From Anaeramoeba ignava BMAN (Eukaryota; Protista; Anaeramoebae): a DNA stretch of 64,000 bases. The stretch lies in assembly GCA_028826165.1 (NCBI GenBank), contig JAPDFW010000119.1:62001-126000 (forward strand). Reading direction: 5' to 3'. The position numbers and the translations under genes were made by a program. Shown here piece after piece: positions 12,201 through 53,373 of this stretch (the first letter of the stretch is position 1; each line of letters opens with the position of its first letter). The notes below the pieces were generated by a model, which searched no databases, was not told the origin of the DNA, and saw nothing but the letters and a program-made list of their open reading frames with translations.

Positions 12201-12558
12201 TGATAATGTCTTCAAGCTCTTGGAACGCAATTACAAAGTTGGTTGAGCCAAATGCCTTCAAACTTCCAATATACTCCACTGCGTTTTCTAGACCCATTCC
12301 TAACGGTATTGCCGTCGCCTCGTGATTGTACGTGATTAAAATAAGCTCGTTTTCTTCGTAAATATTTCGCACTAAACTTTGTACCGCGCTTACTGCGTTT
12401 CTCAATGCTGCTCCGCTCATAGATCCGCTTATATCCAGCATTATTATACTCAGTGGCTTCTTGGTCGCAATTTTGCTCGCTTTTGTTTCGTGTGTAACTG
12501 TCAATGTTATACAGGCTGTATTGTCAATAATGTGATAATTGCTTGTTATGTCAAACAT
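9290..12558 (-). CDS. Large intronless VWA-domain protein (~1090 aa), split by a 1-nt frameshift at ~11752-11756
   Basis: MIDAS LDISGSM, GSTNF, FFTDGQD, IHTIGF. Adding one A to the A5 run in GAC GAA AAA (A)GA CCA AGG GAG ATC joins ORF 11554-12558 to 9290-11719. Confidence 0.85.
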
Positions 12559-26665: not shown

Positions 26666-28441
26666 ATGGAAGAACAAAAAACAGAAAACAAAGAAAACAA
26701 AGAAGATAAAACAGAAAACAAAAGAAAGATAAAACAGAAAACAAAGAAAATAAAACAGAAAACAAAACAGAAGAAAATAAAACAGAAAATAAAACAGAAA
26801 ATAAAACAGAAAATAAAACAGAAAATAAAACAGAAAATAAAACAGAAGATAAAACAGAAAATAAAACAGAAAATAAAACAGAAAATAAAACAGAAAATAA
26901 AACAGAAAATAAAACAGAAAAATAAAACAGAAAATAAAGAAAATAAAGAAAATAAAGAAAATAAAGAAAACAAAACAAATGACAATAACTCAAAACAAAA
27001 CACAATTCCTCATATTAAAATTGAAAAGGAACAAATTGTCAAAAAAATTCAAGAAAAAAAAATGAAAGAAACAACAAAAACAAAAACAAAAACAACATCA
27101 ACAACAAAAAAAACAACAGAAGAAAAAAAATCAGGATTTTCAAAAATTAAAGGATTTTTTTCAGATGTTGGAACAAAAATAAAAAGTACTTTTCAATCAG
27201 AAGAAAAAGATGAAGAAAAAGATGAAGAAAAAGATAAAGAAAAAGAAAAAAAAGTTATTCGAATGGCTAAAAGTTCTCCTCCTTGGGTTGTTTTTGCAAG
27301 AGACCAAGAACAACGTGAAGAACTTCAAGCTCAAATTATTTTTTTATCTAAAGTGAACTTCATTTATTTAATATTATAATTAAAATTAAAATCAAAATTA
27401 AAATTAAAATTAAATTAAAATTAAAATTAAAATTAAAATTAAAATTAAAATTAAAATTAAAATTAAAATTAAAATTAAAATTAAAATTAAAATTAAAACT
27501 AAAATTAAAATTAAAATTCATTTATAAAATTAAAATTAAAATTAATTAAAATTAAAATTAAAATTAAAATTAAAATTAAAATTAAAATTAAAATTAAAAT
27601 TAAAATTAATATTCATTTATAAAATTAAAATTATAAAATTAAAATTCATTTATAAAATTGTTTTTGAAATTGTAATTAAAAAATGTTTTAGAGAACAAGT
27701 AATTTTACAACAAATTGTCCTTCTAATTTTTATTTTGATCTTGATGCACATATTCCAATGGCAAGAGCAGCTTTAAAAGCAGATAGAAGATTACAAAAAG
27801 TTAGATATTATTTAGTTCCAAATCGGTATTTATTATTACAAACAAAAAAAAAAAGAATTAAATATTGAAATAATTTTATTAAAATTTTTTTTTAAAAAGA
27901 ATTGATGAATTAAGTTTTTGGAAAAATTATTTTTGGAGAGTTTATACAATTACAAGAAATTCAGAAAAACTTAGACAAGAAATGACAAAAGACAAGAAAG
28001 AAGAAGTTGAACAAAAAAAAGAAGAAGTTGAACAAAATAATGTAAAATTTTAAAATAATTTAAAAATTTAATTTAAAAAATTAAAATTTGGATAAAAAAT
28101 TTATTCAAAAAAAGGAAAATAATGATGAACAAAAAAAACAAGATCCTCTTCAAGAAAATAAACCTTCAATTCAAACAGAATTTGTTAGTGAAGAAAACAT
28201 AAATCAAAATTTAAGTGAAAATCAAAAAGAAAAAGAAAAAGAAAATTTAAAAGAAAAAGAAAAAGAAAATGAAAAAGAAAATTTAAATGTAAATGAAAAT
28301 GAAAATTTAAATGAAAATTTAAATGAAAATTTAAATGAAAATAAAGATGGTGATGATGAAGATTGGCTTAAATCTTTAGAACAAGAATTAGGTTTCGATC
28401 AAAATGAAACTGAAAAAAAAGAAAATGAAGATAATAATTAA
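26666..28441 (+). CDS. BSD-domain protein (SYAP1/Sap47-like); exons ~26666-27352, 27692-27825, 27900-28041, ~28115-28441
   Basis: PPW..EELQAQIIFLSK|RTSNF..FYFDLD..MARAALKADRRLQKVRYYLVPNR|IDELSFWKNYFWRV; acidic tail DWLKSLEQEL; 12-bp coding repeat near the N-terminus. Confidence 0.88.
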
Positions 28442-28578
28442 TTAAAAAAAAATATTTTTTTTTCAAATCCACAAAAAAAAAAACAAGACGTTCCACTTTT
28501 TTTTTTTTTCAAAATCAAAATCAAAATTAAAATCAAAATTTATTTTTTTCATTTTTTTTCATTTTTTTTATTTTTTAA

Positions 28579-29460
28579 ATGCAAAAAACTTTTCAATTTA
28601 ATTTTTCAAATAAAAAATACATTTTCAATTATCAAATTATTCAAAATGAAAATTCAAATAATTTTATATTATTTTTACATGGACTTGGATGTTCTTCAAA
28701 GTATTATTTACAAGAGGAAATTGTTTTGAATTCATTCCCAAATTCTAATTTAATTTTTTATGATTTTATTGGACATGGAATTAATTGCAAAAATGAAGAA
28801 ATAATAAATGAAAAAGAATCAAAATTATTCGAAATGGAAAATCAAGCATATATTGTTGAAAATTTGCTAAGTATTTATTCTTCAAAACTTGAGAAACTAA
28901 CAATAATTGCTCACAGTATGGGAGGAGCAATTGCCATTTTAGCTATAAATCAAATGATCCAAAAGCAATCCAAAAAGTTCCCAATTTTTTCAAAAGGAGT
29001 TTTTTTCAATATTGAAGGAAATTTAATTGCTGAAGATTGCGGAATTATCACAGAACAAACGATAGATCTTTTCTCACAAAATCCAGAAAAATTTTCTGAA
29101 GAAAACATTAATAATTTAATCAAAAATGCTTGTGATTCTGAAATTTCGAAAAAATGGATCGAAATGGCAAAACTTGTTCAAAAAGATTTTTGGGTTAATT
29201 CTGTTAAATCTTTAGAATATTGGTCAAAAAATGGAGATTTATTCTCAAAATTTATTGAAATTAATGAGAGTTCTTTATGGAAAGTTTATTATGTTTATGG
29301 AGAAAAATCTTCAGGAAATTTAACAAAATTAAAAGAATTATTATTAAATTCTGAAATTTCTTTAATTGTAATTCCTGAATCTGGACATTTTCCAATGTTT
29401 GAAAATGGGAAATATTTCTATGAAAAAATAAGAGGAAAAATAAAAGAAAATTTGAACTAA
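28579..29460 (+). CDS. Alpha/beta hydrolase, intronless
   Basis: FLHGLG oxyanion loop, AHSMGG nucleophile elbow, NIEGNL, SGHFPMFE catalytic His. Confidence 0.9.
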   Translation: MQKTFQFNFSNKKYIFNYQIIQNENSNNFILFLHGLGCSSKYYLQEEIVLNSFPNSNLIFYDFIGHGINCKNEEIINEKESKLFEMENQAYIVENLLSIYSSKLEKLTIIAHSMGGAIAILAINQMIQKQSKKFPIFSKGVFFNIEGNLIAEDCGIITEQTIDLFSQNPEKFSEENINNLIKNACDSEISKKWIEMAKLVQKDFWVNSVKSLEYWSKNGDLFSKFIEINESSLWKVYYVYGEKSSGNLTKLKELLLNSEISLIVIPESGHFPMFENGKYFYEKIRGKIKENLN

Positions 29461-29553
29461 TCAAAAAAAAATATTTTTATTTATTTGGAATTTGGAATTT
29501 TAAATTTGAACTAATCAAAAAAAAAATATTTTTTTTATTGATTTGATTTGATT

Positions 29554-31581
29554 TTAAATTTTTTCATAAAATAGCATATAAGCGTTGCAACCAAGAACTT
29601 CAGCCATACTTACTGGTTGACTGAATCTGTCAGAAATGTGAATCCATTGATCAATTAAATATTGTTTGTTTAGGGATTCAATTGTCATTTTTTTATAAGC
29701 AGTAAAATGACCAGAAGATTCTGGACCATGATGAACAATAACAGATTTCAATTCGTATAATCCATCTTTTTCTTTTGAATCAATATCGGAAATTTCTGCG
29801 ATATATTCCAATCCTTTTTTCTGTTGTTTTCTACGTATATATGATTTGGAAAGATCCAAAAAAGGTGAAGAATTTTCTGAATTTTCTGAATTTTCGAAAT
29901 TTCCTTTAAATTCATTAATATTCAATCTTCAAAACAAATGAATAAACAAAAAAACAAATGATTTAGAATTTTGTTTTGTGTTTTTTTTTTGTTGTTTTTG
30001 CTTACAAAAATGGGAAAGAAACAAAATTCTCAAGTTTTCTAATTTTTTGGATTTTTGGATCGTAAATTTTTCTTTGTAAATGAATACATAATATTTTTGG
30101 TAAAATAGTGAATTTTGTTAGTTTTATCATTGTTGATTTTGTTTTGATTAAGTTATCATAAAAAGTGTCAGAATCCCAAGAATTAGTTTCTCCCTCAAGA
30201 AGTAGATTTTCAAAGTTGTTTATTTTTTTTTGTAAAAATTGAGTTGATTTTTGAGATAAATTTTTTGATTCGTGATTCAATGAATATTTAGTCAACATAT
30301 TTGTTTTAATCAAAGAACAATTTGGACAATCAACTTCGTCCACAAATTCATTTGAAAAGAAATTCTGAAGTAAATTTTCAAGTGTAAATGATTGATTTTT
30401 TTGAGGTGCTTCTTGTGGAAAACTTAATGAAATTTCGTGATTAATAAAATATTTAATTCCAGAATTTCTTGAACATTTTTTGCAAATTAATTGAGTTTGT
30501 CTTATTCCTGTAAATGGATTAATTGAATCCTTAAATTTTTGTGTTTCCTCTAGATTTTGTAATTGATATGAATGTTTTGAAAATAAATTTGCTTTTTTTT
30601 CACTGAAAATGTTTTTCTTGTTTAAAATGGAATTTATTTTTGTTAATGAATTTTTTTGAGAATGATTTTTTTTTGTTGAATTTTGTGTTTCAATTGAATC
30701 AAGAATTTTGATTAATAATTCATGAGAATCTTGAGTTTGTAAATCGAAGTAATTTTCGTGAATATAATTAACTAGAACAAGAGGTGAAACAACTTTTTTT
30801 TCGAAAGAAATGGATTGAATTTCTAAATTTTAATTTTAATTTTTTAATTTTAATATTAATTTTAATTTTATAAATGAATTTTAATTTTAAATTTAATTTT
30901 AAATTTAAATTTTAATTTTAATTTTAATTTGGATTTTAATTTTAATTTTAATTTTATAAATGAATTTTAATTTTAATTTTATAAATGAATTTTAATTTTA
31001 ATTTTAATTTTAATTTTATAAATGAATTTTAATTTTAAATTTAATTTTAAATTTAAAATTAATTTTAATTTTATAAATGAATTTTAATTTTAATTTTATA
31101 AATGAATTTTTATAAGTGAATTTTAATATTAATTTTAATTTTATAAATGAATTTTAATTTTAAATTTATAAATGAATTTTAATTTTAATTTTAATTTTAA
31201 TTTTGATTTTAATTTTAATATTAATTTTAATTTTATAAATGAATTTTAATTTTAATTTTATAAATGAATTTTAATTTTAATTTTATAAATGAATTTAATT
31301 TTTTAAATTTAATTTATTTTTAATTTTATAAATGAATTTTAATTTTAATATTATAAAAATAATATACCATTTAAAAATGGTAATAATAAATGACCAATAG
31401 TTCCTTCAGAAGGATTTAATAATAATAAACTTTGATAAAAACTTGTACAACTTGATAAAGATTGTAATAATGCATTAAGATAACAAGATCCTCTAATATT
31501 TACTAATCCTGTTGCATAAATTCTTACACTTTTTCCTTTTTCTTGTGTTTTTGATGATTTTAAAGAAGAAATTTCACTCAT
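29554..31581 (-). CDS. Ubiquitin-specific protease (peptidase C19, USP30/Ubp16-like); exons 31581-31368, 30822-30006, 29926-29554
   Basis: Cys box GLVNIRGSCYLNALLQSL, QDSHELL, LPKILCIHLQR, His box VHHGPESSGHFTAY, WIHISD, AYMLFYE. Confidence 0.92.
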
Positions 31582-31695
31582 TTATTATTAAATATTAATA
31601 AATAATAATTATATTATTTAATTAAAAAAAAAATGAAAAATTTTTTTGAAATTTTTTTTTTCATTTTTTTTCATTTTTTTTTTTACTCTTTTGAA

Positions 31696-34600
31696 ATGTC
31701 AGATTTAGATGATTTAATTAATGAAGAAATTAACAGTAATATAAGGAAATTTAAAACAATTGGTAAATCAAATAAAAAAAGCAAATTTTCAAAATAAAAA
31801 TAAAAAAATAAAAAAATAAATCCAAAAAAAAAATATTCATTTTTAAATTAATTTTTATTATGTAAAAGATAATAAAATTTATTCAGGACCAGATATAAAA
31901 CCATTAAATAAAGAAAATAAAGAAAATAAAGAAAATAAATTAAATAAAGAAAATAAAGAAAATAAATTAAATAAAGAAAATAAAGAAAAAATAAAAAATA
32001 AAATAAAAATAAAGAAAAAAAGAAAATCAATTAAATAAAGAAAAATAAAGAAAATAAAGAAAATAAAGAAAATAAAGAAAATAATTAAATTAAATTTAAA
32101 GAAAATAAAAAAATTATGAATTTTCTTTAAATAAACAAAAGAAAATTTAAATAAAATAAATTCAAATTAAATAAAAATAAAATCAGAAAATGATTATAAA
32201 GAAAATCAAGAAAATAAAGAAAATGAAGAAAATAAAGAAAATAAAGAAAATCCAATTAAATTAATTCCATTTTTTGTCGGATTCAATAAAAAATATTATG
32301 ATATTTTCTTTAATGAACAAAATCAAGATTTAAATAATTCAAATTCAAATTCAAATTCAAATGAATCAGAAAATGATTATCAACAAAATTTAAAAAAATA
32401 TTCACCAAAAAAATTAAATGAATTACCTGAATTTCCCCAAATTGATAAATTTAAAACATTTGTTGAATTTGAACAAGCAGTTCTTGAATGGAAAACATTA
32501 TCAAAAAAATATATTGGTTTTGGTAAATTACCACAACCAATATAAATAATTTTAAATTAATAAATATTTAAATTTAAAATATATTTAAATTAATATTTAA
32601 TAAATATTTAAATTAATAAATAATATTATTTAAATTAATAAATAATATTTAAATTTAATAAATAATATTTAAATTAATCAATAATATTTAAATTAATAAA
32701 TAATATTTAAATTAATAAATATTATCTAAATTAATAAATATTTAAATTAATAAATATTTAAATTAATAAATATCTAAATTAATAAATATCTAAATTAATA
32801 AATAATATTTAAATTAATAAATATTATTTAAATTAATAATAAATATTTAAATTAATAAATATTTAAATTTATAAATAATAATTAAATTAATAAATATTTA
32901 AATCAATAAAAATATTTAAATTAATAAATAATATTTAAATCAATAAATATTTAAATTAATAAATAATATTTAAATTAATAAATATTATCTAAATTAATAA
33001 ATATTTAAATTAATAATAATATTTAAATTAATAAATATTTAAATTAATAAATATTTAAATTAATAAATAATATTTAAATTAATAAATATTATTTAAATTA
33101 ATAAATATTATTATTTAAATTAATTTTAAATTAATATTTTAAATTTAACAAATATTTAAATTAATAAATATTTAAATTAATAAATAATATTTAAATTAAT
33201 AAATATTTAAATTAATAAATAAATTAATTAATAAATATTTAAATTAATAAAAAATATTTAAATTAATAAATATTTAAATTAATGAAATAATATTTAAAAA
33301 TAATAAAAAAATTTTAAATTAATAAATATTTAAATTAATAAATATTTAAATTAATAAATATTTAAATTAATAAAATAAAATTAATAAAATTTTAAATTTA
33401 AAATTTAAATTAATAAATATTTAAATTAATAAATATTTAAATTAATAAATATTTAAATTAATAAATATTTTAAATTAATAAATAATATTTAAATTAATTA
33501 AATTAAAATATTTAAATTAATAAATATTTAAATTAATAAATATTTAAATTAATAAATAATATTTAAATTAATAAAATATTTAAATTTAAATATTTAAAAT
33601 TAATAAATATTTAAATTAATAAAATATTTAAATTAATAAATATTTTATTAATAAATATTTAAATTAATAAATATTTAAATTAATAAATATTATTTAAAAT
33701 AAATAATATTTAAATTAATAAATATTTAAATTAATAAATATTTAAATTAATAAATATTTAAATTAATAAATATTTAAATTAATAAATATTTAAATTAATA
33801 AATATTATCTAAATTTAAATTTAAATTTAAATTTAAATATTTAGTCAAGCATTGAAGATGAAATCACAGCAAAATCTTCAGAAATTGAATCTGATAGAAA
33901 AATATCTTTTGATCATCGAAAATCTTCAGATTCTTCATTCAAATATACAGACAAAATTATGAACGTATTAGATAATCCAGAAAAAAACTCAGAAATGATT
34001 AATCTTTCATCTGATCAAGAATTTTCAGAAGTAAAAAAATAAATAAAAAGAAAATAAAAAGAAAAAAAGAAAGTTAATTCAAAAAAAATAAATAGCCTTT
34101 ACCTCAATTTTTAACAAAGAAAACCTCCATTTTGGATGAAAATGATATTTGGAAACACCAATTATTTATTCCACCTCCAGAAGAAGAATTTTATTCAAGT
34201 TATGAAGGTTATTAAGGTTATTATTATTATTGTTATTATTTTTTGAATATTTTTTGAATATTTAGTATCCAAAAAAATCAAAAACGAAAAAAATCAATTT
34301 ATAGAATTTGAAAATGCTTATTTAAATTGGGCTAATTTAATGAATAATGAATTAAAAATAATTCCTCCTCATCCTAAACAAATTAGTGAACTTTATGGAA
34401 TTAAAATCCAAGAAAAAAAGAAAAAACAAAAAAAAGAACAAACGGAAAACGAAAAAAGTTCAGATCCTCAAGTATTTTTCATAAAAATAAATCACAAAAA
34501 TAAAAACATGCCAATTTTTCATGTTCAAAATTGTTATTAAATCCAAATTTAGAAGGAAGAAAAGAAATTACTTGAAAATCTTGATAATCAAGTTTCAAAA

Positions 34601-38611: not shown

Positions 38612-38806
38612 ATAATAAAAAAGAAAAAAACCAAAACTAAAAAACTAAAAAACTTTTTCATTTTTTTTTTAATTTAAAATTCATTATTATTTAATTCTTC
38701 ATAATTTGATTTTTGTTTTTGGAAAATTTGATCAAAAAGAAAAAAAGGAAAAAAAAGTGGAACAAAAGTAAAAAGAAAAAAAGAAAAAAAGAAAAAAGAA
38801 TTGTTT

Positions 38807-40127
38807 TTAATTATTTTGAGTTGGATTTTGTTGAGGATTATAAGTTGAAAAATCAGGGAAATTCATTCCAACAGGACCTTGATAATTATTATCAGGACCT
38901 TGATAATTAGGTTGAAAAGCTGGTTGATAACTTGGTTCATAATTTGGTTGTTGATAATTAGGTTGAAAAGCTGGTTGATAAGTTGGTTCTTGATAATTTG
39001 GTTGATAACTTGGTTGATAATTTGGTTGATAATTTGGTTGATAACTTGGTTCATAAATTGGTTGTTGAATTGTTGTTGTTATTGTAACTGGTTTTATGGA
39101 TATACTATTAGCTGATGAATTATAAGCTGCTAATCTTTTTTTTTGTGCCTTTTTTTTTTAAATTTTGATTTTAATTTTTGGATTAAATTTGATTTTAATT
39201 TTGATTTTGATTTTGATTTTAATTTTGATTTTAATTTTAATTTTAATTTTGATTTTAATTTTTTTAATTTTGATTTTAATTTTGATTTTGATTTTGATTT
39301 TAATTTTGATTTTGATTTTGATTTTAATTTTGATTTTGATTTTAATTTTAATTTTAAATTTGTTTTTAATTTAAATTTTGATTTTAATATTAATATTGAT
39401 TTTAATTTTAATTTTGATTTTAATTTTAATTTTAATTTATATTTTGATTTTGATTTTAATTTTAAATTTGTTTTTGATTTTAATTTTAATTTAAATTTTA
39501 ATTTTGATTTTGATTTTAATTTTAATTTTGATTTTTGATTTTGATTTTGATTTTAATTTTAATTTAAATTTTAATTTTGATTTTAATTTTAATTTATATT
39601 TACTCTTCTTGCTAAACAAACACAACAAATAGAAAGAATTATAACACCTGCTATTGCTCCAAAAATTGCTCCTAAAATCTAATTTAATTTTAATTTAATT
39701 TAATTTAATTTAATTAATAAAAATAAAAAAATTGGATTAAAATTGAATTATACTTTTGCTAAATATCCAGGACAATCACTTTTGAAATACTCCCAATTAT
39801 TGCAATTATCATTATCAAATCTTGTTTAAAAAGAGAAAAAAAAAAGAGAATTAAAATTATTTTAAAAAGATTTTTTTTATAAAATATAAAAATAATTTTA
39901 ATTACATGCTATCATAACATTGTTCATTATCTTTACACCAATCACAAGAGTAATCATCTAAACAAGAAGTACAAGATGTTTTTGAACTAAAAATAAACAA
40001 ATTTTGTTTATTCAGTTTTTTTTTGTTTATTTTATTTTATATTGTTTATTTTTTATTTTTTATTTTACGTGCAAGTTGAACTTAAAACATAACCAATAAT
40101 AACGAGAAAATAAAAGAAACCATACAT
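38807..40127 (-). CDS. PSI-domain single-pass membrane protein, copy A (5 exons)
   Basis: MYGFFYFLVIIGYVLSSTC | SKTSCTSCLDDYSCDWCKDNEQCYDS | FDNDNCNNWEYFKSDCPGYLAK | ILGAIFGAIAGVIILSICCVCLARR | AQKKRL..(YQPN)n..GMNFPDFSTYNPQQNPTQNN*; GT-AG junctions. Confidence 0.85.
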
Positions 40128-40319
40128 TTTTATTCTCAAAAGAAAGAAAGAAAAAGAAAGAAAAAGAAAGAAAAAGAAAGAAAAAGAAGAAAAATGATTT
40201 TTTTTCCCTAATTTTTTTATTTTGATCAGTTCAAATAATTTTTTAATAAATTTTTTAATTGAATAAAAAATTGAAAATAGAAAGTGGAATAAAAATGAAA
40301 TCAAAATAAATATTTGATT

Positions 40320-41178
40320 TTAATTATTTTGATATTGATTTTGTGGAGGATTATAAGTTGAAAAATCAGAGAAATTCATTCCAATAGGACCTTCATAATT
40401 AGGTTGATAATTATTATCAGGATCTTGATAATTTAATTGGAAATTTGGTTCTTGATAACCTAATTGGAAATTTGATTCTTGATAATTTGGTTCTTGATAA
40501 TTTGGTTCATAAATTGGTTGTTGATAATTTTGTTGTTGATAAGTTGGTGTTAAACTAATTGTATTATCTGATGTTTTATGTTCTTCTGATTTTAAATCCT
40601 ATATTTTTTAAATTTTGATTTTGATTTTGATTTTGATTTTGATTTTGATTTTAATTTTGATTTAGATTTTGATTTTGATTTTGATTTAGATTTTGATTTT
40701 AATTTTAATTTTGATTTAGATTTTGATTTTAATTTTAATTTTGATTTTGATTTTGATTTTGATTTTGATTTTGATTTTGATTTTTGATTTTTGGATTTAA
40801 TTTTAATTTTGATTTTGATTTTGATTTTGATTTAGATTATAATTTCATTTAAATTAAATTTTGTGAATCAATAAAAACTAACTTGTTTTTCGGATTGTTC
40901 TTCATGATAAATTAAACGCCATTTTTGTTGATCTGATAATAAACGCATAGCTTTTTTTTGTATATTGGGAATTTTGAGATCATTCTATTAAAAATTAAAT
41001 TTCCAAAAATTAAAAAAAATGAAATTTTAAATGAATAATAAAATTGCTTTTTCCGAACCAGAAAATTTTCAAATTTTTCATTCAATTCCTGTTTTGAAGG
41101 TAATGGTGGTAAATTATTTGATTGAATATTTGATGATTTTTCTATCTCGTATGTTGGCTTTACAATACAATTTCCCAT
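40320..41178 (-). CDS. Chimeric array member B: MGNC + formin GBD-like N-terminal segment spliced to the family tail exon; exons 41178-41059, 40984-40883, 40598-40320
   Basis: MGNCIVKP..PPLPSKQELNEKFENFL | NDLKIPNIQKKAMRLLSDQQKWRLIYHEEQSEKQ | DLKSEEHKTSDNTISLTPTYQQQNYQQP..GMNFSDFSTYNPPQNQYQNN*; both introns are phase-0 GT-AG. Confidence 0.65.
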
Positions 41179-41350
41179 TTTTTGTTTTAATTTGTAAATC
41201 AAATTTTAATTTTGATTTTGATTGAAGAATAAAATAAAATAAAAGGAGAAAATGAAAGAAAAAAAATGAAAAATATTTTGGAAATTTAATTGAATAAAAA
41301 ATTGAAAATTAAAAGTGGAATAAAAATGAAATCAAAATAAATATTTGATT

Positions 41351-42989
41351 TTAATTATTTTGATATTGATTTTGTGGAGGATTATAAGTTGAAAAATCAG
41401 AGAAATTCATTCCAATAGGACCTTCATAATTAGGTTGATAATTATTATCAGGACCTTGATAATTTAATTGGAAATTTGGTTCTTGATAACCTAATTCATA
41501 AGTTGGCTCTTTATATCCTAATTCCAAATTTGATTCTTGATAATTTGGTTCTTGATCAATTAATTTTTTGTAAGTTGGTTCTTCATTTGTTGTTGTTGGT
41601 TTTTTTGCAAGTGGTTTTAAAGCAATGGAAATATTGGATTTTCTATATCCTTTAGATTTTCTTTTCTTTCTCTCTCTCTTGATTTTAATTTTAATTTTAA
41701 TTTTAATTTTGATTTTAATTTTGATTTTGTAAATGAATTTTAATTTTAATTTTAATTTAGATTTTGATTTTAATTTTGATTTTGATTTTGATTTTGATTT
41801 TGATTTTGATTTTAATTTTAATTTTGATTTTGATTTTAATTTTGATTTATATTTTGATTTTAATTTTACTCTTATATAACAAAAAATACAACAACCAATT
41901 AGAAAGAGAGATCCTAGAACCGATCCAACAATTGTTCCCATAACCTAAATGATTTGAATTATTTTTTTCAAATGTTCAAATTTTAAAATAGAAAATTTGG
42001 AATAAAAAATCAATACTTTCTCAATTTCACCAGGGCAATGCGCTTTTCGGGATATAGAACCAGAACAATGTATATCATCACTTTTTAATTTTGATTTTGA
42101 TTTTGATATTGATTTTGATTTTGATTTTAATTTTGATTTTGATTTTGAATTTAATTTTAATTTTAATTTTAATTTTGATTTTAATTTTAATTTTAATTTT
42201 AATTTTAATTTTAATTTTAATTTTAATTTTGATTTTAATTTTGATTTTGATTTTGATTTTGATTTTAATTTTAATCTTGATTTTGATTTTGATTTTGATT
42301 TTGATTTTGATTTTAATTTTGATTTTGATTTTAATTTTGATTTTGATTTTGATTTTGATTTTGAATTTGATTTTGATTTTAATATTGATTTTGATTTTAA
42401 TTTTAATATTGATTTTGATTTTGATTTTGATTTTAATTTTGATTTTGATTTTGATTTTGATTTTGATTTTGAATTTAATTTTAATTTTGATTTTGATTTT
42501 GAATTTGATTTTGATTTTGATTTTAATTTTAATTTTGATTTTGATTTTAATTTTGATTTTGATTTTGATTTTGATTTTAATTTTAATTTTAATTTTGATT
42601 TTGATTTTAATTTTAATTTTGATTTTGATTTTAATTTTGATTTTGATTTTAATTTTAATTTTAAATTTGTTTTTGATTAAAGAAAAAGAGAAATCAATTT
42701 TTTACTCTTCACCATAACACAGATTAGAATCGGGGCACCAAAAACATTCAATAGTTTCTGCACAAGAGGTGCATTTTGAATAAGAACTTATCAAAAGAAA
42801 TTAATTAATTAATTTTTTTTTGTTTTAGGGAATTTTTATTATTTGGAATTGTTGGAATTGTTTTATAAAAAGCAAAACAAAAAATTAATTTTTCTTTTCT
42901 CTTTTTGCTTTTTTTTTTGTTTATTTTTACGAGCATGAAGTACTCAAAACCGAACCAATAATTAATAAAAAATAAAAGAAAGTGATCAT
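41351..42989 (-). CDS. PSI-domain membrane protein, copy C (divergent ectodomain)
   Basis: MITFFYFLLIIGSVLSTSC | SYSKCTSCAETIECFWCPDSNLCYGE | DDIHCSGSISRKAHCPGEIEK | VMGTIVGSVLGSLFLIGCCIFCYIR | tail ending NQYQNN*. Confidence 0.83.
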
Positions 42990-43184
42990 TTAAGAAAAAA
43001 TTGAAAGAAAAAAAATGAAACAATTTTTTGGTTATTTCAAAAAAAATTATTAAAAAATCCTTTTATAAATTTGATTGAAGATTTTTTTCTCTTTTGTTTT
43101 TATTTAATTGAATAATTGAATAATTGAATAAAAAAAATTGAGAATGAAAAGTGGAATAAAAATGAAAAAGAAAAAGAATTGTTT

Positions 43185-44945
43185 TTAATTATTTTGATAT
43201 TGATTTTGTTGAGGATTATAAGTTGAAAAATCAGGGAAATTCATTCCAACAGGATTTTGATAATTATTATCAGGACCTTGATAATTAGGTTCTTGATAAC
43301 CTAATTGTAAATTTGATTCTTGATAATTTTGTTGTTGATAATTTTGTTCTTGATAAGTTGGTTGTTGATAACTTGGTTGATAAGTTGGTTGTTGATAGCT
43401 TGGTTCTTGATAAGTTGGTTCTTGATAAGTTGGTTGATAAGTTGGTTCTTGATAAGTTGGTTGTTGATAACTTGGTTGTTGATAACTTGGTTGTTGAATT
43501 GTAACTGGTTGTAAACCGATTGTATTACCTGATTTTCTATATTCTTCTAATCTTCTTTTTTGTGCCTTTTTTAATTTTGATTTTAATTTTGATTTTAATT
43601 TTTGGATTAAATTTTGATTTTAATTTTGATTTTGATTTTGATTTTGATTTTGATTTTTATTTTTAATTTTAATTTTGATTTTAATTTTGATTTTAATATT
43701 GATATTGATTTTAATTTTAATTTTAATTTTAATTTTAATTTTAATTTTAATTTTAATATTGATATTGATATTGATTTTAATTTTAATTTTGATTTTAATT
43801 TTTGGATTTAATTTTAATTTTAATTTTAATTTTGATTTTAATTTTGATTTTAATTTTAATTTTAATTTTAATTTTGATTTTGATTTTGATTTTGATTTCG
43901 ATTTTGAATTTGATTTTGATTTTGATTTTAATTTTGATTTTAATTTTGATTTTGATTTTGATTTTGATTTTAATTTTGATTTTAATTTTAATTTTGATTT
44001 TAATTTTTGGATTTTGATTTTGATTTTAATTTTGATTTTTGGATTAAATTCATTTTGATTTTTAATTTTATTACTTTTTTAGAGCAATAAACACAACAAG
44101 CTATCAGAATTATCAAACCAGCTAATCCTCCAAAAACTGCTCCAAAAATCTAATTTAATTTAATTTAATTTAATTTTAAGAATAAAGATAAGAATAAATA
44201 TAAGAATACTGTTGCCATATATCCAGGACAACTACTTGTTAGATGTTTCCAATCGCTGCAATAATCATAATCAGATCTTTTGTTTTCAAATTTAATATTA
44301 ATTTTAATTTTAATTTTAATTTTAATTTTGATTTTAATTTTAATTTTAATTTTAATTTTAATTTTAATTTTGATTTTGATATTAATTTTAATTTTAATTT
44401 TTAATTTTAATTTTGATTTTTGGTTTAATTTTAATTTTATTTTTGATTTTTGATTTTAATTTTAATTTTAATTTTAATTTTAATTTTTGGATTAGATTTT
44501 AATTTTAATTTTATTTTTGATTTTTATTTTAATTTTGATTTTAATTTTAATTTTGATTTTAATTTTGATTTTGATTTTGATTTTAATTTTAATTTTGATT
44601 TTGATTTTAATTTTGATTTTAATTTTATTTTTAATTTTAATTTTTGGATTAAATTTTAATTTTAAAAAGATTAAAAAAAAGAAGAAGAACTTACACACTA
44701 TCATAACAATGCTTATTAGTTTCACACCATTCACAATCAAAATCATCTAAACAAGAAGTACATTTTGTATAAGAACTGATCTCAAAATATTAATTTAATT
44801 GTTTATTTGTTTTAAAAAAGCAAAAGAGTTAATTTTTGTTTCTTTTTTTTTTATTTTTATTTTTATTATTTTTATTTTATTTTTACGTGCAAATTGTGCT
44901 AAAAACCGAACCAATAATTAATAAAAAATAAAAGAAAGTGATCAT
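43185..44945 (-). CDS. PSI-domain membrane protein, copy D
   Basis: MITFFYFLLIIGSVFSTIC | SYTKCTSCLDDFDCEWCETNKHCYDS | SDYDYCSDWKHLTSSCPGYMAT | ILGAVFGGLAGLIILIACCVYCSKK | AQKRRLEEY..(YQQP)n tail. Confidence 0.85.
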
Positions 44946-45157
44946 AATAAAAAAAAAAGAAAGAAAAAAAATGAAAATAAATTGATCGAAATAAATTTTT
45001 ATTTTGATTGATTTTTTTTTAAATATTTTTTTATTTTCGTTTTATTATTTTTTTTTTGGAAGAAAAAAATTGAAAGAAAAAAAAAGAAGAATAAAAAAAA
45101 TCAATCAAAAAAAAGAAGAATAAAAAAAAAATCAAATCAAATCAAAAATAATTGATT

Positions 45158-47043
45158 TTAATTATTTTGAGTTGGATTTTGTTGAGGATTATAAGTTGAA
45201 AAATCAGGGAAATTCATTCCAACAGGACCTTGATAATTAGGAGGTTGAAAATTATTATCAGGTTGAGAGAAATTCATTCCAGTTGGTCCTTGATAATTTG
45301 GTTCTTGATAATTTAATTGGAAATTTGGTTGTTGATAATTTGGTTGATAACTTGGTTCTTGATAAGTTGGTTGATAACTTGGTTGATAAGGTGGTTCTTG
45401 ATAAGTTGGTTCTTGATAAGTTGGTTGATAACTTGGTTGTTGAATTGTTGTTGTTATTGTAACTGGTTTTAAATCAAGTTTATTAGCTGATTTTCTGTAT
45501 TCTTCTAATCTGTTGTTTTGTGCCTTTTTTATATTTTGATTTTAATTATGATTTTAATTTTATAAATGAATTTAAATTTTAATTTTAATTTTAATTATGA
45601 TTTTAATTTTAATTTTAATTTTAATTTTAATTTTAATTTTAATTTTAATTTTAATTTTAATTTTAATTTTAATTTTAATTTTAATTTTAATTTTAATTTT
45701 AATTTTAATTTTAATTTTAATTTTAATTTTAATTTTAATTTTATAAATGAATTTTAATTTTAATTTTAATTATGATTTTGATTTTAATTTTATAAATGAA
45801 TTTAAATTTTAATTTTAATTTTAATTTTAATTATGATTTTAATTTTAATTTTAATTTTAATTTTAATTTTAATTTTAATTTTAATATTAATTTTAATTTT
45901 AATTTTAATTTTAATTTTAATTTTAATTTTAATTTTAATTTTAATTTTATAAATGAATTTTAATTTTAATTTTAATTTTAATTTTAATTTTATAAATGAA
46001 TTTTAATTTTAATTTACTCTTCTGGCGCAATAAACACAACAACATATAAGAATTATCAAACCTGCTATTGCTCCAAAAACTGCTCCTAAAATCTAATTTA
46101 ATTTAATTTAATTTAATTTAATTTCAATATAAAAAAGTGGAATTTAAATTAAATAAAAATAAGAATGTACTGTTGCTAAATATCCCGGACAATTACTTTT
46201 GATATATTTCCAATCATTGCAATAATCATAATCAGATCTTTTGTTTTCAAATTTGATTTTAATTTTAATTTTTAATTTTAATTTTAATTTTAATTTTAAT
46301 TTTAATTTTAATTTTAATTTTAATTTTAATTTTAATTTTGATTTTGATTTTGATTTTAATTTTGATTTTAATTTTAATTTTAATTTTTAATTTTAATTTA
46401 TAATTTTGATTTTATAAATGAATTTTAATTTTATTTTTGATTTTGATTTTAATTTTAATTTTAATTTTAATTTTAATTTTAATTTTAATTTTAATTTTAA
46501 TTTTAATTTTAATTTTAATTTTAATTTTAATTTTAATTTTAATTTTAATTTTAATTTTAATTTTAATTTTAATTTTAATTTTAATTTTAATTTTAATTTT
46601 AATTTTTATTTTAATTTTAATTTTTAATTTTAATTTTTAATTTTGATTTTAATTTTAATTTTGATTTTTATTTTAATTTTGATTTTAATTTTAATTTTAA
46701 TTTTAAATTTAATTTTAAATTTAATTTTAATTTTTATTTTTAAATTTAATTTTAATTTTAATTTTAATTCTTATTTTAATTTTAAAAAAAAGAAAAGAAA
46801 AATACTTACGTGCTATCATAACAATGTTTATTAGTTTCACACCATTCACAAAATATATCATCTAAACAAGAAGTGCATTTTGTTTTTGAACTAATAAAAA
46901 AAAAATTGTTTATTTAAATTTTTTTTGTTTATTTAAATTTTTTTTTTTTATTTTTATTTTTATTAGTTCATTATTATTTTTTACGTGCAAGTTGTGCTAA
47001 AAACTGAACCAATAATTAATAAAAAATAAAAGAAAGTGATCAT
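45158..47043 (-). CDS. PSI-domain membrane protein, copy E
   Basis: MITFFYFLLIIGSVFSTTC | SKTKCTSCLDDIFCEWCETNKHCYDS | SDYDYCNDWKYIKSNCPGYLAT | ILGAVFGAIAGLIILICCCVYCARR | tail containing QPPNY. Confidence 0.85.
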
Positions 47044-47176
47044 AATAAAAAAAAGAAAGAAAAAAGAAAGAAAAAAAATGAAAAAAAATTTTTTTAAAAC
47101 AAAAAACAAAAAAAAAAGGGAAATTAAATTAAATTTAAATTAAGAATTGATTTGAATTTTGTGAGAAATAATAAAT

Positions 47177-48750
47177 TTAAAGATCATGATGACTCATTTC
47201 GACTTTATTTTCTAAATTATTATTTTGGAATTCTTGATAATTTGTTTCTTGATAACTTAATATTGGATTTAATTCTTGATTATTTGATTCATAATTTAAT
47301 TCAGAATTTTGTTCTTTATTGTTTGGATCTGATATTATTGTTGGATTTGGAGAATCTTCTAATTTGAGATTATCGACAGAATTATGTTGTTTTTTTTTCG
47401 AAAAGGCTTTTTTCCTTGACTTATTTTTTTTTGGATTTTATTTTAATTTTCATTTTGATTTTGATTTTGATTTTAATTTTAATTTTAATTTTAATTTTAA
47501 TTTTGATTTTAATTTTAATTTTAATTTTGATTTTGATTTTAATTTTAATTTTAATTTTAATTTTAATTTTAATTTAAATTTTGGTTTTAATTTTGATTTT
47601 AATTTTTGGATTTAATTTTAATTTTGATTTTAATTTTAATTTTAATTTTGATTTTAATTTTGATTTTAATTTTGATTTTAATTTTGATTTTGATTTTGAT
47701 TTTAATTTTGATTTTAATTTTAAATTTTAATTTTGATTTTAATTTTGATTTTGATTTTGATTTTGATTTTAATTTTGATTTTGATTTTTGGATTTGATTT
47801 TGATTTTAATTTTGATTTTGATTTTGATTTTGATTTTGATTTTAATTTTAATTTTAATTTTAATTTTGATTTTGATTTTGATTTTGATTTTAATTTTGAT
47901 TTTAATTTTAAATTTTAAATTTTATTTTGATTTTGATTTTGATTTTGATTTTGATTTTGATTTTGATTTTGATTTTGATTTTAATTTTGATTTTGATTTT
48001 TATTTTTAATTTTAATTTTAATTTTGATTTTGATTTTGATTTTGATTTTGATTTTGATTTTGATTTTAATTTTAATTTTGATTTTAATTTTGATTTTGAT
48101 TTTGATTTTGATTTTAAATTTTAAATTTTGATTTTAATTTTGATTTTAATTTTGATTTTAATTTTGATTTTAATTTTGATTTTGATTTTGATTTTGATTT
48201 TGATTTTGATTTTAAAAATACTTTTTGAATCCAAAACAAAGAACAAATAATAATTAAAATAACAGCTGCTAATCCACCTAAATATGCTCCTAAAACCTAA
48301 ATAAAAATAATTAAAATAAATAAAAATAATTAAAATAATTAAAATAATTAAAATAATTAAAATAATTAAAATAATTAAAATAAATAAATACTGTTGGTAA
48401 AGATTCAGTGCATTGACTTGAATTTTCTTTCCATTCATCGCAAGAATTATAAAAAGATCTTTTAATTTTCAGTTTAAATTGGGATAGAAAATGTGATTTT
48501 GATTTGGATTTTTTGGAATTAAAATAAAAAAGAAAAATAATTTACTTATTTTCATAACATTCATGATTAGTTTGACACCAATAACAATTAATTTCATTTG
48601 TACAAGAAGAACAAGTTTCTGAACTATCCAAAGTATAAAATATAAAATATAAAATAAAAGAAAAGAAATTATTTTTATTTTTATTTATTTTTACATGCAA
48701 TTTTGGTTCAAAACTGAATTAATAAATAAGAATAAAAGAATAATTTTCAT
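47177..48750 (-). CDS. PSI-domain membrane protein, copy F (most divergent tail)
   Basis: MKIILLFLFINSV..NC | SSETCSSCTNEINCYWCQTNHECYEN | SFYNSCDEWKENSSQCTESLPT | VLGAYLGGLAAVILIIICSLFWIQK | SRKKAF..EMSHHDL*. Confidence 0.8.
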
Positions 48751-48894
48751 TTTAAAAAAAAAATGAAATTAAAATTTGTTTTTTTTTTCTTTTTCATTCA
48801 ATAAAAAAAGCAAAAAAAAAAGAAAGTGGAACAAAAGAGGGCAAAATAAAGGAAAAAAAGAAAAATGAAAAGAGAAAAAAAGCAAATAGACTTT

Positions 48895-51067
48895 TTAATT
48901 ATTTTGAGAAGGATTATAATTAGGAGGTTGAAAATTATTATCAGGATGAGGGAAATTCATTTGAAGAGGAGGTTGGAAATTATTATCAGGACCTTGATAA
49001 TTTGGAGGTTGAAAATTTGGTTCTTGATAATTTGGTTGAAAATTGGTTGTTGGAAATTTGGTTCTTGATAATTTGGTTGAAAATTTGGTTCTTGATAATT
49101 TGGTTGATAATTTGGTTGATAACTTGGTTGAAAGTTTGGTTCATAATTTGGTTTGTAATTTGGTTCATAATTGGGTTCCTGTAATGTTGTGGGTGTAGTT
49201 ACAGTTACTGGTTTGAGACTAATATTATTGTTTGATGATGTATAAGATTGTAATTTTTTTTTCTGTGCCTTTTTTTTAAAATAAATTAATTTTTTAATTT
49301 TAATTTTGATTTTAATTTTGATTTTAATTTTAATTTTAATTTTGATTTTAATTTTGATTTTAATTTTGATTTTGAATTTTAATTTTAATTTTGATTTTGA
49401 TTTTGATTTTGATTTTGATTTTAATTTTGATTTTGATTTTGATTTTGATTTTGATTTTAATTTTGATTTTAATTTTGATTTTGATTTTTGATTTTGATTT
49501 TGATTTTGATTTTAATTTTAATTTTAATTTATATTTACTCTTCTAACTAAACAAACACAACAAATAGAAAGGATTATAACACCTGCTATTGCTCCAAAAA
49601 CTGCTCCTAAAATCTAATTTAATTTAATTAAATTTAATTTAATTAATAAAAATAAAAAAATTGGATTAAAATTGAATTATACTTTTGCTAAATATCCAGG
49701 ACAATCACTTTTGAAATATTTCCAATCGCTACAATTTTCATTATCCAATCTGTGAATTTATTTCAATTAAATTGAATTGAATATTGAATTGAATTAAATA
49801 TTGAATTGAATTAAATATTGAATTAAATTGAATATTGAATTAAATTAAATTGAATATTGAATTGAATTAAATATTAAATTAAATATTGAATTAAATTGAA
49901 TATTAAATTGAATATTGAATTAAATTAAATATTGAATTAAATATTGAAAATTGAATTAAATATTGAATTGAATATTGAATTAAATATTGAATTGAATATT
50001 AAATTGAATATTGAATTAAATTAAATATTGAATTGAATTGAATATTGAATTAAATATTGAATTGAATTAAATATTGAATTAAATATTGAATTGAATTAAA
50101 TATTGAATTGAATTAAATATTGAAATGAAATTGAATTAAATATTAAATTGAATTGAATATTGAATTAAATATTGAATTGAATTAAATATTGAATTAAATT
50201 GTTGAATTAAATATTAAATTGAATATTTGAATTAAATATTGGTTGAATATTGAAAATTGAATATTGAAATAAAAATAAAAATAAAAATGAATTGAATATT
50301 GTCATAAATTTTGAATCCTGAATATTAAATTCAAAAATATTGAATTGAATATTGAAATTTAAATTAAATAAGGGAAAAATAAAAATTAAATATTAAATTG
50401 AATTAAAAAGAAAATTAAAAGAAAAAAAAAGGAAAAATTTTGAATTGAATTGAATATTGAATTAAATATTGAATATTGAATAAATATTGATTTAAATATA
50501 AAAATGAATATTAAATTAAATATTGAATTGAATATTAAATTAAATATTGAATTAAATATTAAATTAAATATTGAATTAAATATTGAATTGAAAATTGAAT
50601 TAAATATTGAATTAAATTGAATATTGAATTAAATATTGAATTAAATTGAATATTAAATTAAATATTGAATTAAATATTGAATTGAATTGAATATTGTATT
50701 AAATTAAATTGAATTGAAAATTAAAGATGATCTGGAATTGATTTGAATTGAATTGAGTTGAATTATTGAATGTTGAATTGAATACTAAATTAAAAAAATA
50801 AAATAAAAAATGATTTACGTGCTGTCATAACATTTTTTATTATCCTCACACCAATCACATAAATAACTTGTCAAACAACTTTCACAAGAAGTTTGTGAAC
50901 TATTTACAAAACAAAAAAAAAGGGAAAAATAAAAAAAATTGATAATTTGATGAAATTAATTAAAAAGAAAATGAAAAGAAAACAAAAAGGAAAAAAAAAT
51001 TTTTTTCTTACGTGCAACTTGTAAAAACAGAACCAATAATTAATAAAAAAGTCAAGAAAATAAACAT
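48895..51067 (-). CDS. PSI-domain membrane protein, copy G
   Basis: MFIFLTFLLIIGSVFTSC | SQTSCESCLTSYLCDWCEDNKKCYDS | LDNENCSDWKYFKSDCPGYLAK | ILGAVFGAIAGVIILSICCVCLVRR | tail with two QPPNY; ~1 kb satellite in intron 2. Confidence 0.85.
49760..50810. repeat. (AATATTGAATT[AA])n satellite in intron 2 of copy G; same type at ~52610-53030 in copy H
   Basis: Read directly. Confidence 0.88.
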
Positions 51068-51364
51068 CTTTAATTTAGAAAATAAAAAAATGAATTTCCA
51101 ATTTTTATTTCATTTTTTTTATTTAAAATTTTTTTAATAAGAAAAAAGGAAAAAGAAAAAAGAGAGAATAAAAAGAAAATGAAATCAAAAGTGGCAAAAA
51201 TGATAAAAAAAATTTAATTTTGTGATCGTTTTTGTAAAAATTTTCTTCTTTATTAAAATGAAATCAACCAAACAAACAAAGAAAAGAATTGAAAAGAAAG
51301 AAAAGAAAAGAAAAGATTGAAAAGAAAAATAAATTCCAAAAACAAAAATGAATGAAAAATTTTT

Positions 51365-53373
51365 TCAGTTGAAATTTGAATTAAAATTTTGATTTTGAAA
51401 ATCATTTTGGAAATTAGATTGAGAAAAATCCATTCCGATTGGACCTTGATAATTTGGATCTTGGTAACTTGGACCTTGATAATTTGGTTGAAAATTTGGA
51501 TCTTGAAAATTCTTTGAAGGTTCTTGATAATTTGGTTGAAAATTTGGATCTTGGAAATTCTTTGAAGGTTCTTGATAATTTGATTGAAAATTTGGATCTT
51601 GATAATTTGGTTGGAAATTTGGTTGATAAGTTGGTTGAAAAGTTGGTTGGTAATTTGGTTGGAAAGTTGGTTCTTGATAATTTGATTGATAATTTGGTTG
51701 ATAATTTGAATCTTGATAAGTTGGTTGAAAATTTGGTTCTTGAATTGGTTGTGTTCCTACTTGTACTTTTTCAAGAGTAACTGAATTTCCAGCTGCTTGT
51801 CTTTGATTAGCAATATTTCTTGCTCTCTTTCATTTTTGATATTAAATTGAATATTAAATTGAATTGATTTAATGTAATTTGATTTGATTTGATTTGATTT
51901 AATTTGATTTGATTTGATTTAATTTGATTTGATTTGATTTAATTTAATTTAATTTAATTTGATTTAATGTAATTTGATTTAATGTAATTTTGATTTTGAT
52001 TTGATTTAATGTAATTTGATTTAATTTTGATTTTGATTTGATGTAATTTGATTTAATGTAATTTGATTTGATTTGATTTAATTTGATTTAATTTGATTTG
52101 ATTTGATTTGATTTAATTTAATTTGATTTAATTTAATTTGATTTAATTTGATTTGATTTGATTTTGATTTGATTTAATTTGATTTAATTTTGATTTGATT
52201 TGATTTAATTTTGATTTGATTTGATTTGATTTGATTTGATTTGATTTAATTTTGATTTGATTTGATTTGATTTAATTTGATTTAATGTAATTTGATTTGA
52301 TTTGATTTAATTTAATTTAATTTAATTTGATTAAAATTTAATTGCAAAAAAATTACTCTTTGAGCAAAGCAAATACAACAAATCATTAGAATGATGCAAC
52401 CTGCTACTGATCCAAGAACTGCTCCAATAATCTAAATGAATTAAAAAGTAAAAAAAATGAGAATTTCAAAATTTATCAAATCAATCCAAAAAAAAAATAA
52501 AGGAAAAATGAAAATAAAAAGATAATTACAACTGCTACATTTTCTGGACATGAACTTTGATCAAAATACCAATCACTACAACTTGGATCATCAGACCTTT
52601 TAGAAGGAAATTGAATATTGAATATTAAATATTAAATTGAATTGAATTAAATATTAAATATTGAATTAAATTAAATATTAAATTAAATATTAAATTGAAT
52701 ATTCAATATTGAATATTAAATATTAAATTGAATTAAATATTGAATATTAAATTGAATATTAAATTGAATTAAATATTGAATTGAATATTGAATTAAATAT
52801 TGAATTGAATTGAATTAAATATTAAATTGAATTAAATATTAAAAATTAAATATTAAATTAAATATTAAATTGAATATTAAATATTAAATTGAATTGAATT
52901 AAATATTAAATTGAATTGAATTAAATATTGAATATTAAATATTAAATTGAATTGAATATTAAATATTAAATTGAATTGAATTAAATATTAAATTAAATAT
53001 TGAATTAAATATTAAATATTAAATTAAAATGGTTAAAAAGAATTAATGACTCACATTAGATAATAACAATGTTTATCACTTTGACACCAATTACAACTAT
53101 AACCTGAAACACAACTCTTACAAGAACTTTCTGAACTAAATAGGAAAAATTTTTTTAATAAAATATTAAATTAATTTAATTTATTTTATTAAATTTTTTT
53201 TTTTGATGAAACAAAAAAGGAAAAAAATTTTTTTTGTTATTTCAAAATAATCAAAATCAAAATCAATAAAATAAAATAAAATGATCAAAAGAAATTTAAA
53301 TAATTTACCTGCAAGTACTAAAAACAGAATTAATCAAAAAAAATCCAATAAAGAAATAAATCAAAAATTGCAT
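51365..53373 (-). CDS. PSI-domain membrane protein, copy H
   Basis: MQFLIYFFIGFFLINSVFSTC | SESSCKSCVSGYSCNWCQSDKHCYYL | SDDPSCSDWYFDQSSCPENVAV | IIGAVLGSVAGCIILMICCICFAQR | ARNIANQRQ..(NFQPNYQ)n tail; (GATTT/AATTT)n in intron 4. Confidence 0.85.

Follow-up and report, generated by a model that had tools for sequence, protein, structure and literature searches.

What has happened to the copies of a tandem gene array when the closest relative of one copy changes along its length? This question is raised by a minus-strand array at positions 38807-53373 of the window, the 64,000-nucleotide stretch of Anaeramoeba ignava BMAN contig JAPDFW010000119.1 (assembly GCA_028826165.1, positions 62,001 to 126,000) analysed here, which holds seven five-exon genes (A, C, D, E, F, G, and H) and one chimeric gene, B. 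An earlier note on this DNA described the copies as exon-by-exon mosaics, and proposed that recombination or gene conversion in satellite-filled introns reassorts ectodomain, transmembrane (TM), and tail cassettes into a combinatorial diversity of receptors. We find that the patchwork is real and that the kind of event behind it is ordinary; what is new is the family and the organism. Tandem duplication followed by short-tract interlocus (ectopic) gene conversion between copies is the explanation that we favor, at a probability of roughly 0.8.

A tract shared by copies A and G

The clearest exchange involves A and G, which lie 10 kb apart. Their tract (Table 1) is ~97% identical, as against 73–77% in the flanks. 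All 8 mismatches in exon 3 fall within the first 31 nt of the exon (at or above 39790), and an exact run of 88 nt (39702-39789) crosses the border between exon 3 and intron 3. Exon 3b and intron 3 together differ by one substitution and one 6-nt indel in ~110 nt, exon 4 differs at 4 of 75 positions, and the stretch of intron 4 included in the tract is exact. Outside the tract, identity between the two copies is 77% in exon 1, 73% in exon 2, and 71–74% in exon 5, while introns 1–2 (41–60% alike) are saturated or not alignable, and synonymous divergence in the ectodomain exons is ~0.58. The near-identity of A to G across exon 3, intron 3, and exon 4, as first described, is therefore borne out, except that it starts in mid-exon 3, at 39789.

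Exchange was evaluated with MaxChi, a GENECONV-like scan, and the pairwise homoplasy index (PHI), in our own implementations with permutation and on one genome of one strain. Set against G and E, copy A sides with G at 37 of 41 informative sites between mid-exon 3 and the beginning of intron 4, as compared with 57 of 150 elsewhere (MaxChi permutation, p<=0.002). The G-like contrast without the repetitive exon 5 is 34:3 vs 17:26 (Fisher p=7e-7). The GENECONV-like scan recovered the A-G fragment at a global p=0.0005, and PHI was significant both over exon 1 to intron 4 (p=0.0008) and once exon 5 was added (p=0.0002). GENECONV-like matches in exon 5 that involve F or H were not relied on, as these tails are barely homologous. 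There is no closer donor copy elsewhere in the 42.8-Mb assembly.

The tree of the tract groups A with G (support 88/97) and rejects A+E (approximately unbiased (AU) test, p=0.013). The A-G path length in the tract is 0.033, tenfold shorter than the 0.37 found in exon 1 to exon 3a. In the exon 5 tree, by contrast, G groups with its neighbor H (93/97), and A falls with C, D, and E. Unrooted quartets of A, G, D, and E return AG|DE in almost every segment; we dropped them as proof of A-G sisterhood, because a position of G outside A+D+E gives the same pattern. Counts polarized by outgroups give a clear answer for the A-G tract and for the tail, but not for exon 2. The resemblance of A exon 2 to D and E claimed earlier holds for raw identity (81% to E and 77% to D, vs 73% to G), although its placement is ambiguous once outgroups are included.

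Shared tracts elsewhere in the array

Further near-identical stretches join A to E, B to C, C to D, and E to G (Table 1), and tract lengths range from 46 to 225 bp overall. The end of the A tail matches E without a mismatch, as had been stated, while the contrast with D comes down to two small clusters that hold the 5 nt in 121 at which D differs from A. Across all 10 pairs of A, B, C, D, and E, the final 27 codons hold 0 synonymous differences and up to 9 non-synonymous ones, which is the opposite of purifying selection and points to recent homogenization. The B-C tract comprises the last 146 nt of the coding sequence and 66 nt of the 3′ flank. The near-identity of the two copies had been noticed before, with an end in B (40485) that lies 20 nt too far.

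Exon 1 of C was described as almost identical to that of D and E. Its overall identity to them is 88%, with 7 mismatches at the 3′ end, and it is the first 44 nt that equal D. The strong divergence reported for exons 2–4 of C is confirmed, as they are only 39–64% like all other copies, about as far as members outside the array. Judged from its sequence, C looks like an old copy of which both ends have been overwritten.

Could such patches arise without any exchange, if regional selective constraint and an extreme A+T codon bias kept some segments alike? The tail-end motif is conserved even in distant family members, and residues of the TM segment and the Cys framework are constrained, both of which such a history would accommodate. 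However, constraint would remove non-synonymous rather than synonymous changes, the opposite of what is seen at the tail end. A and G have 94% identity in intron 3, against 45–84% for other pairs; the B-C identity runs on into the 3′ flank; and both PHI and the GENECONV-like scan are conditioned on polymorphic sites. Because the tracts cover neutral sites (intron 3, synonymous sites, and the 3′ flank), selection is ruled out as their cause, and we regard an array shaped by constraint without exchange as very improbable. The dN/dS ratios are 0.3–1.0 for the ectodomain and 0.3–1.4 for ectodomain plus TM; on 18–25 synonymous sites, these figures are too noisy for a claim of diversifying selection.

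Read support for the junctions

False identical patches might also be produced during assembly or polishing, by the collapse of repeats or by cross-polishing between paralogues, and this genome is repeat-rich. We compared read-derived contigs from two DNA runs of this organism and one run behaving as RNA with the repeat-free stretch 39596-40611. De Bruijn contigs of the two DNA runs carry the G-like block of A (from 39733 or 39760) into the A-specific exon 3a, and continue through intron 2 and exon 2 as far as the upstream spacer. Separate short-read contigs hold the two versions of the tract shared by B and C, each with its own flank, and an RNA contig joins G's own exon 3a to the block that it shares with A. 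In addition, the A-G tract retains 3% differences. What also speaks for an artefact is a frameshift in a homopolymer of the G tail, and position 39870 of the window, in intron 2 of A, where short-read contigs of two runs have one extra T relative to the assembly. The latter mismatch suggests a homopolymer-length error in the assembly. Taken together, these observations make it extremely unlikely that the shared patches were created by assembly.

Tract ends and the satellite introns

The switches between relatives had been said to fall mostly in introns 2 and 4, in satellites of the (AAAATT/C)n type. Mapping of the breakpoints against the satellites does not sustain this. About 10 tract ends could be placed (Table 1), of which one, the 3′ end of the A-G tract, is possibly in a satellite intron (intron 4), although introns 2 and 4 make up ~53% of the gene length. 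The tracts cut inside exons 1, 3, and 5, so that the mosaic is not an exon-by-exon one either. The A-G 3′ end cannot be placed more exactly within intron 4, because the satellite there is 75–96% alike between any two copies. The tail exon is itself a tandem repeat with units of 12–51 nt, which may explain why many ends lie inside exon 5. Exon-5 identity is highest at its far end.

The satellites differ between copies. Intron 2 of A and F is without a satellite; in H, intron 4 carries a (TTGAT)n pentamer satellite and intron 2 a 7/12-nt repeat; and the 1-kb intron 2 of G (49766-50783) is filled by a different satellite, with units of 12, 17, and 29 nt. Repeat units at homologous intron positions appear to turn over between copies. 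Every (AAAATY)n array in 38800-49600 is A-rich on the sense (minus) strand.

If breaks or misalignment in the satellites of introns 2 and 4 reassorted cassettes (exons 1–2, 3–4, and 5), new receptors would result. The A-G tract has its 3′ end in intron 4, where the first 24 nt match G exactly and the last 30 nt of the A intron side with E/D at 8 of 9 informative sites; chimera B is joined across a satellite intron with matching phase 0; and a formin gene of the parental type also has satellite introns. All of these would suit such a mechanism. By contrast, about nine of the ten tract ends lie outside introns, A has no satellite in intron 2, the tail homology of B starts inside exon 5, and the exchanged units are short rather than whole exons or exon groups. 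Beside the satellites the copies match poorly, with identities of 59–81% at the start of exon 5 and 29–72% at the edges of intron 2 except in D-E. Hexamer satellites occur across the window in introns and spacers, as well as in the introns of an unrelated formin gene, and a tandem pair of family members on another contig (C128) has a long satellite in intron 3, yet a uniform identity of 78–81% with no high-identity patches. On account of this window-wide distribution, the low flanking identity, and the patch-free pair, the satellites are generic intron filler here, with no sign in the data that they direct exchanges. Reassortment of cassettes through them is thus unlikely.

The matching intron phases that had been cited in support of shuffling are indeed the same in all seven genes, but paralogues share phases anyway. 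Combinatorial receptor diversity is speculation, and the best-resolved tracts make copies more alike without creating new combinations. Recombination or gene conversion between copies, the other part of the earlier proposal, is upheld by the site-pattern tests, the neutral sites, and the read contigs, whereas the intronic-satellite cassette mechanism attached to it is not. In a variant of that mechanism, which we consider unlikely as well, intronic microsatellites in this extremely A+T-rich genome would be frequent break sites that seed tracts in nearby exons and occasionally join exons of unrelated genes, as in chimera B. If this were true, satellite introns would drive exon shuffling and the diversification of receptor families throughout the genome, which might bear on how symbionts are recognized.

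Chimera B

Chimera B combines two exons that resemble the beginning of a formin GBD with a tail exon; all three are phase 0, and the frame is open. Its match to the Drf_GBD profile is weak (E 0.011), and a paralogue of its exon 1 lies on another contig (C64), in a formin gene that also has satellite introns. B becomes homologous to the tail exon ~5 codons into the canonical exon 5. The read-derived contigs compared with 39596-40611 included no RNA contig specific to B. Of the structures here, B alone is compatible with exon shuffling in or close to a satellite intron.

Probable gene conversion between neighboring copies

Under the explanation that we favor, the array would have grown by tandem duplication of a five-exon gene for a small type I membrane protein, and short stretches would later have been copied between the copies by interlocus gene conversion, with a paralogue as the repair template. 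Each event would have overwritten roughly 50–225 bp regardless of exon borders. The candidate events are the A-G tract, reaching from the middle of exon 3 to the edge of intron 4; a repeated homogenization, among A-E, of the tail exon's final ~85 nt, the tail end thus being a probable favored target; the 212-nt tract that joins B and C; and the 5′ tract that joins C to D. Some unequal exchange in the repetitive tail exon is possible as well. We infer the mechanism (homology-directed repair on a paralogue template), the direction, and the timing of these events. Most estimates place the mean length of tracts in interlocus conversion between 50 and several hundred bp (PMC3924818), and since the tracts found here match these published sizes, conversion fits.

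Several points weigh against this explanation. The AU test leaves A+G unrejected in exon 1 to exon 3a (p=0.06) and in exon 5 (p=0.125), because these segments are short, and incongruence of the exon trees by topology alone is weak to modest. The exon-5 signals depend on the alignment of an internally repetitive exon. Partial re-duplication or unequal crossing-over could yield the same end state in some tracts, for example in B-C. Finally, in a single genome of a single strain, no event is seen segregating.

Interlocus conversion and concerted evolution are known from other tandem families, including Caenorhabditis paralogues (PMC3966223) and Arabidopsis RPP8 (bioRxiv 10.1101/694240; reviewed in PMC3924818). 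The Anaeramoeba array resembles these systems in its short tracts of near-identity between diverged neighbors, 50 to a few hundred bp long, which are blind to exon borders and include introns and flanks. It differs from them in being a new family in a new organism, and in that about half of each gene is intronic microsatellite, for which reason tracts cannot be followed across introns. With exon shuffling by intronic recombination, the array shares chimera B, in which phase-0 exons are joined in frame across a satellite intron. In the seven canonical copies, however, exchange disregards exons, and the phases on either side of the exon 3–4 block are 2 and 0, which means that it is not a symmetric cassette.

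In trypanosome VSG and Plasmodium var genes, mosaic genes arise by segmental conversion between clustered surface-protein paralogues. The array is similar in showing segmental conversion among such clustered paralogues, but nothing seen here points to switching that is programmed or linked to expression, to a silent archive, or to diversifying selection, and the clearest tracts homogenize the TM segment and the tail rather than the ectodomain.

Interlocus gene conversion would thus operate in Anaeramoeba, a little-studied anaerobic protist. Because the signal peptide, TM segment, and tail ends of neighboring copies are partly homogenized, trees of paralogues in this genome are no straightforward record of duplication. 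The support for satellite introns as shuffling platforms is removed, with chimera B remaining as one concrete case.

Gene models and protein family

Exons were defined by coordinates and splice rules, and the spliced models were translated to check their frames. The introns of all seven five-exon genes are GT..AG, with phases 2,2,0,0. A+T content is ~80% in the window, and 80.65% in the A. ignava BMAN genome (Anaeramoeba genome paper). The features of the array are listed in Table 1.

Table 1. Genes, shared tracts, intron-4 satellite, and tract ends of the array (window positions)
Feature	Position	Strand	Description
Copy A	38807..40127	-	exons 40127-40069, 39986-39906, 39820-39754, 39678-39604, 39148-38807; 207 aa; open spliced frame
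Copy B (chimera)	40320..41178	-	exons 41178-41059, 40984-40883 (formin-GBD-like), satellite intron, tail exon 40598-40320
Copy C	41351..42989	-	exons 2-4 divergent; 5′ end D-like, 3′ end B-identical
Copy D	43185..44945	-	same 5-exon structure
Copy E	45158..47043	-	same 5-exon structure
Copy F	47177..48750	-	gene structure as others, tail unrelated
Copy G	48895..51067	-	tail frame broken near 49041-49047
Copy H	51365..53373	-	eighth family member, past the end of the region covered by the earlier note (51067)
A-G high-identity tract	A 39580..39789, G 49515-49718	-	from the 3′ part of exon 3 through intron 3 and exon 4 to 24 nt into intron 4
A-E tail-end identity	A 38805..38888, E 45156-45239	-	84 nt, 0 mismatches
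B-C tract	B 40254..40465, C 41285-41496	-	212 nt, 3 mismatches (98.6%), abrupt edges
C-D 5′ tract	C 42946..42989, D 44902-44945	-	first 44 nt of C exon 1 identical
E-G stretch	E 45233..45278, G 48916-48961	-	46 nt, 96% alike
A intron-4 hexamer satellite	39157..39595	-	similar arrays in intron 4 of C-G and intron 2 of C-E
Tract end inside exon 3 (1)	~39790		A-G 5′ end, 31 nt into exon 3
Tract ends inside exon 5 (4)			A-E, B-C, both ends of the 46-nt E-G stretch
Tract end inside exon 1 (1)			C-D
Tract ends in 3′ flank (2)			
Tract end upstream (1)			position imprecise
Tract end somewhere in intron 4 (1)			A-G 3′ end

D and E are collinear, with 83–86% identity, satellites included. In exon 5 of G, the homopolymer at 49041-49047 is 1 nt short, which shifts the frame to a stop at 48957, while the original frame stays open for ~50 codons further, to 48895; G is either a very young pseudogene or carries an assembly error here. 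An RNA contig shows the G mRNA spliced across exons 2-3-4 exactly at the predicted junctions, and a separate RNA contig shows that the C tail is transcribed. Four further, more distant family members lie outside the array, on contigs C128 (the tandem pair, at 27500-33500), C116, and C78, which brings the family to at least 12 loci in this genome. The family appears small and lineage-specific. It is uncharacterized, and could merit attention in connection with surface recognition, the organism being one that keeps bacterial symbionts.

From the translated models, exon 1 is predicted to encode a signal peptide, exons 2–3 a Cys-rich, PSI-like module, exon 4 a TM helix, and exon 5 a Q/P/N/Y-repeat tail. 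Exon-2 peptides alone score 18.5–22.8 bits against Pfam PSI (PF01437; cut-off 23.1), with E from 1e-4 to 3e-3 (2e-4 for A), and their matches span profile positions 5–29 of 52. Exon 3 alone has no match in Pfam. The array proteins resemble PSI-domain single-pass membrane proteins of PTTG1IP-like architecture, in that a signal peptide is followed by one Cys-rich, PSI-like module and a TM helix, and the cytoplasmic tail is short and has Tyr motifs. What sets them apart is the tail, a Q/P/N/Y repeat that has its own motif conserved at the C-terminus. This motif lies within the C-terminal ~27 residues in A-E, around G-M-N-F (in A, 38807-38890), and is partly present in the C78 members; it may serve in sorting or interaction.

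Elsewhere in the window, the minus-strand stretch 9290-12558 has 42% G+C in a genome of 20% G+C. Its long reading frames, of 809 aa and 334 aa, have no introns; the shorter one is von Willebrand A-like by eye, and the stretch may represent a foreign gene, laterally acquired or viral.

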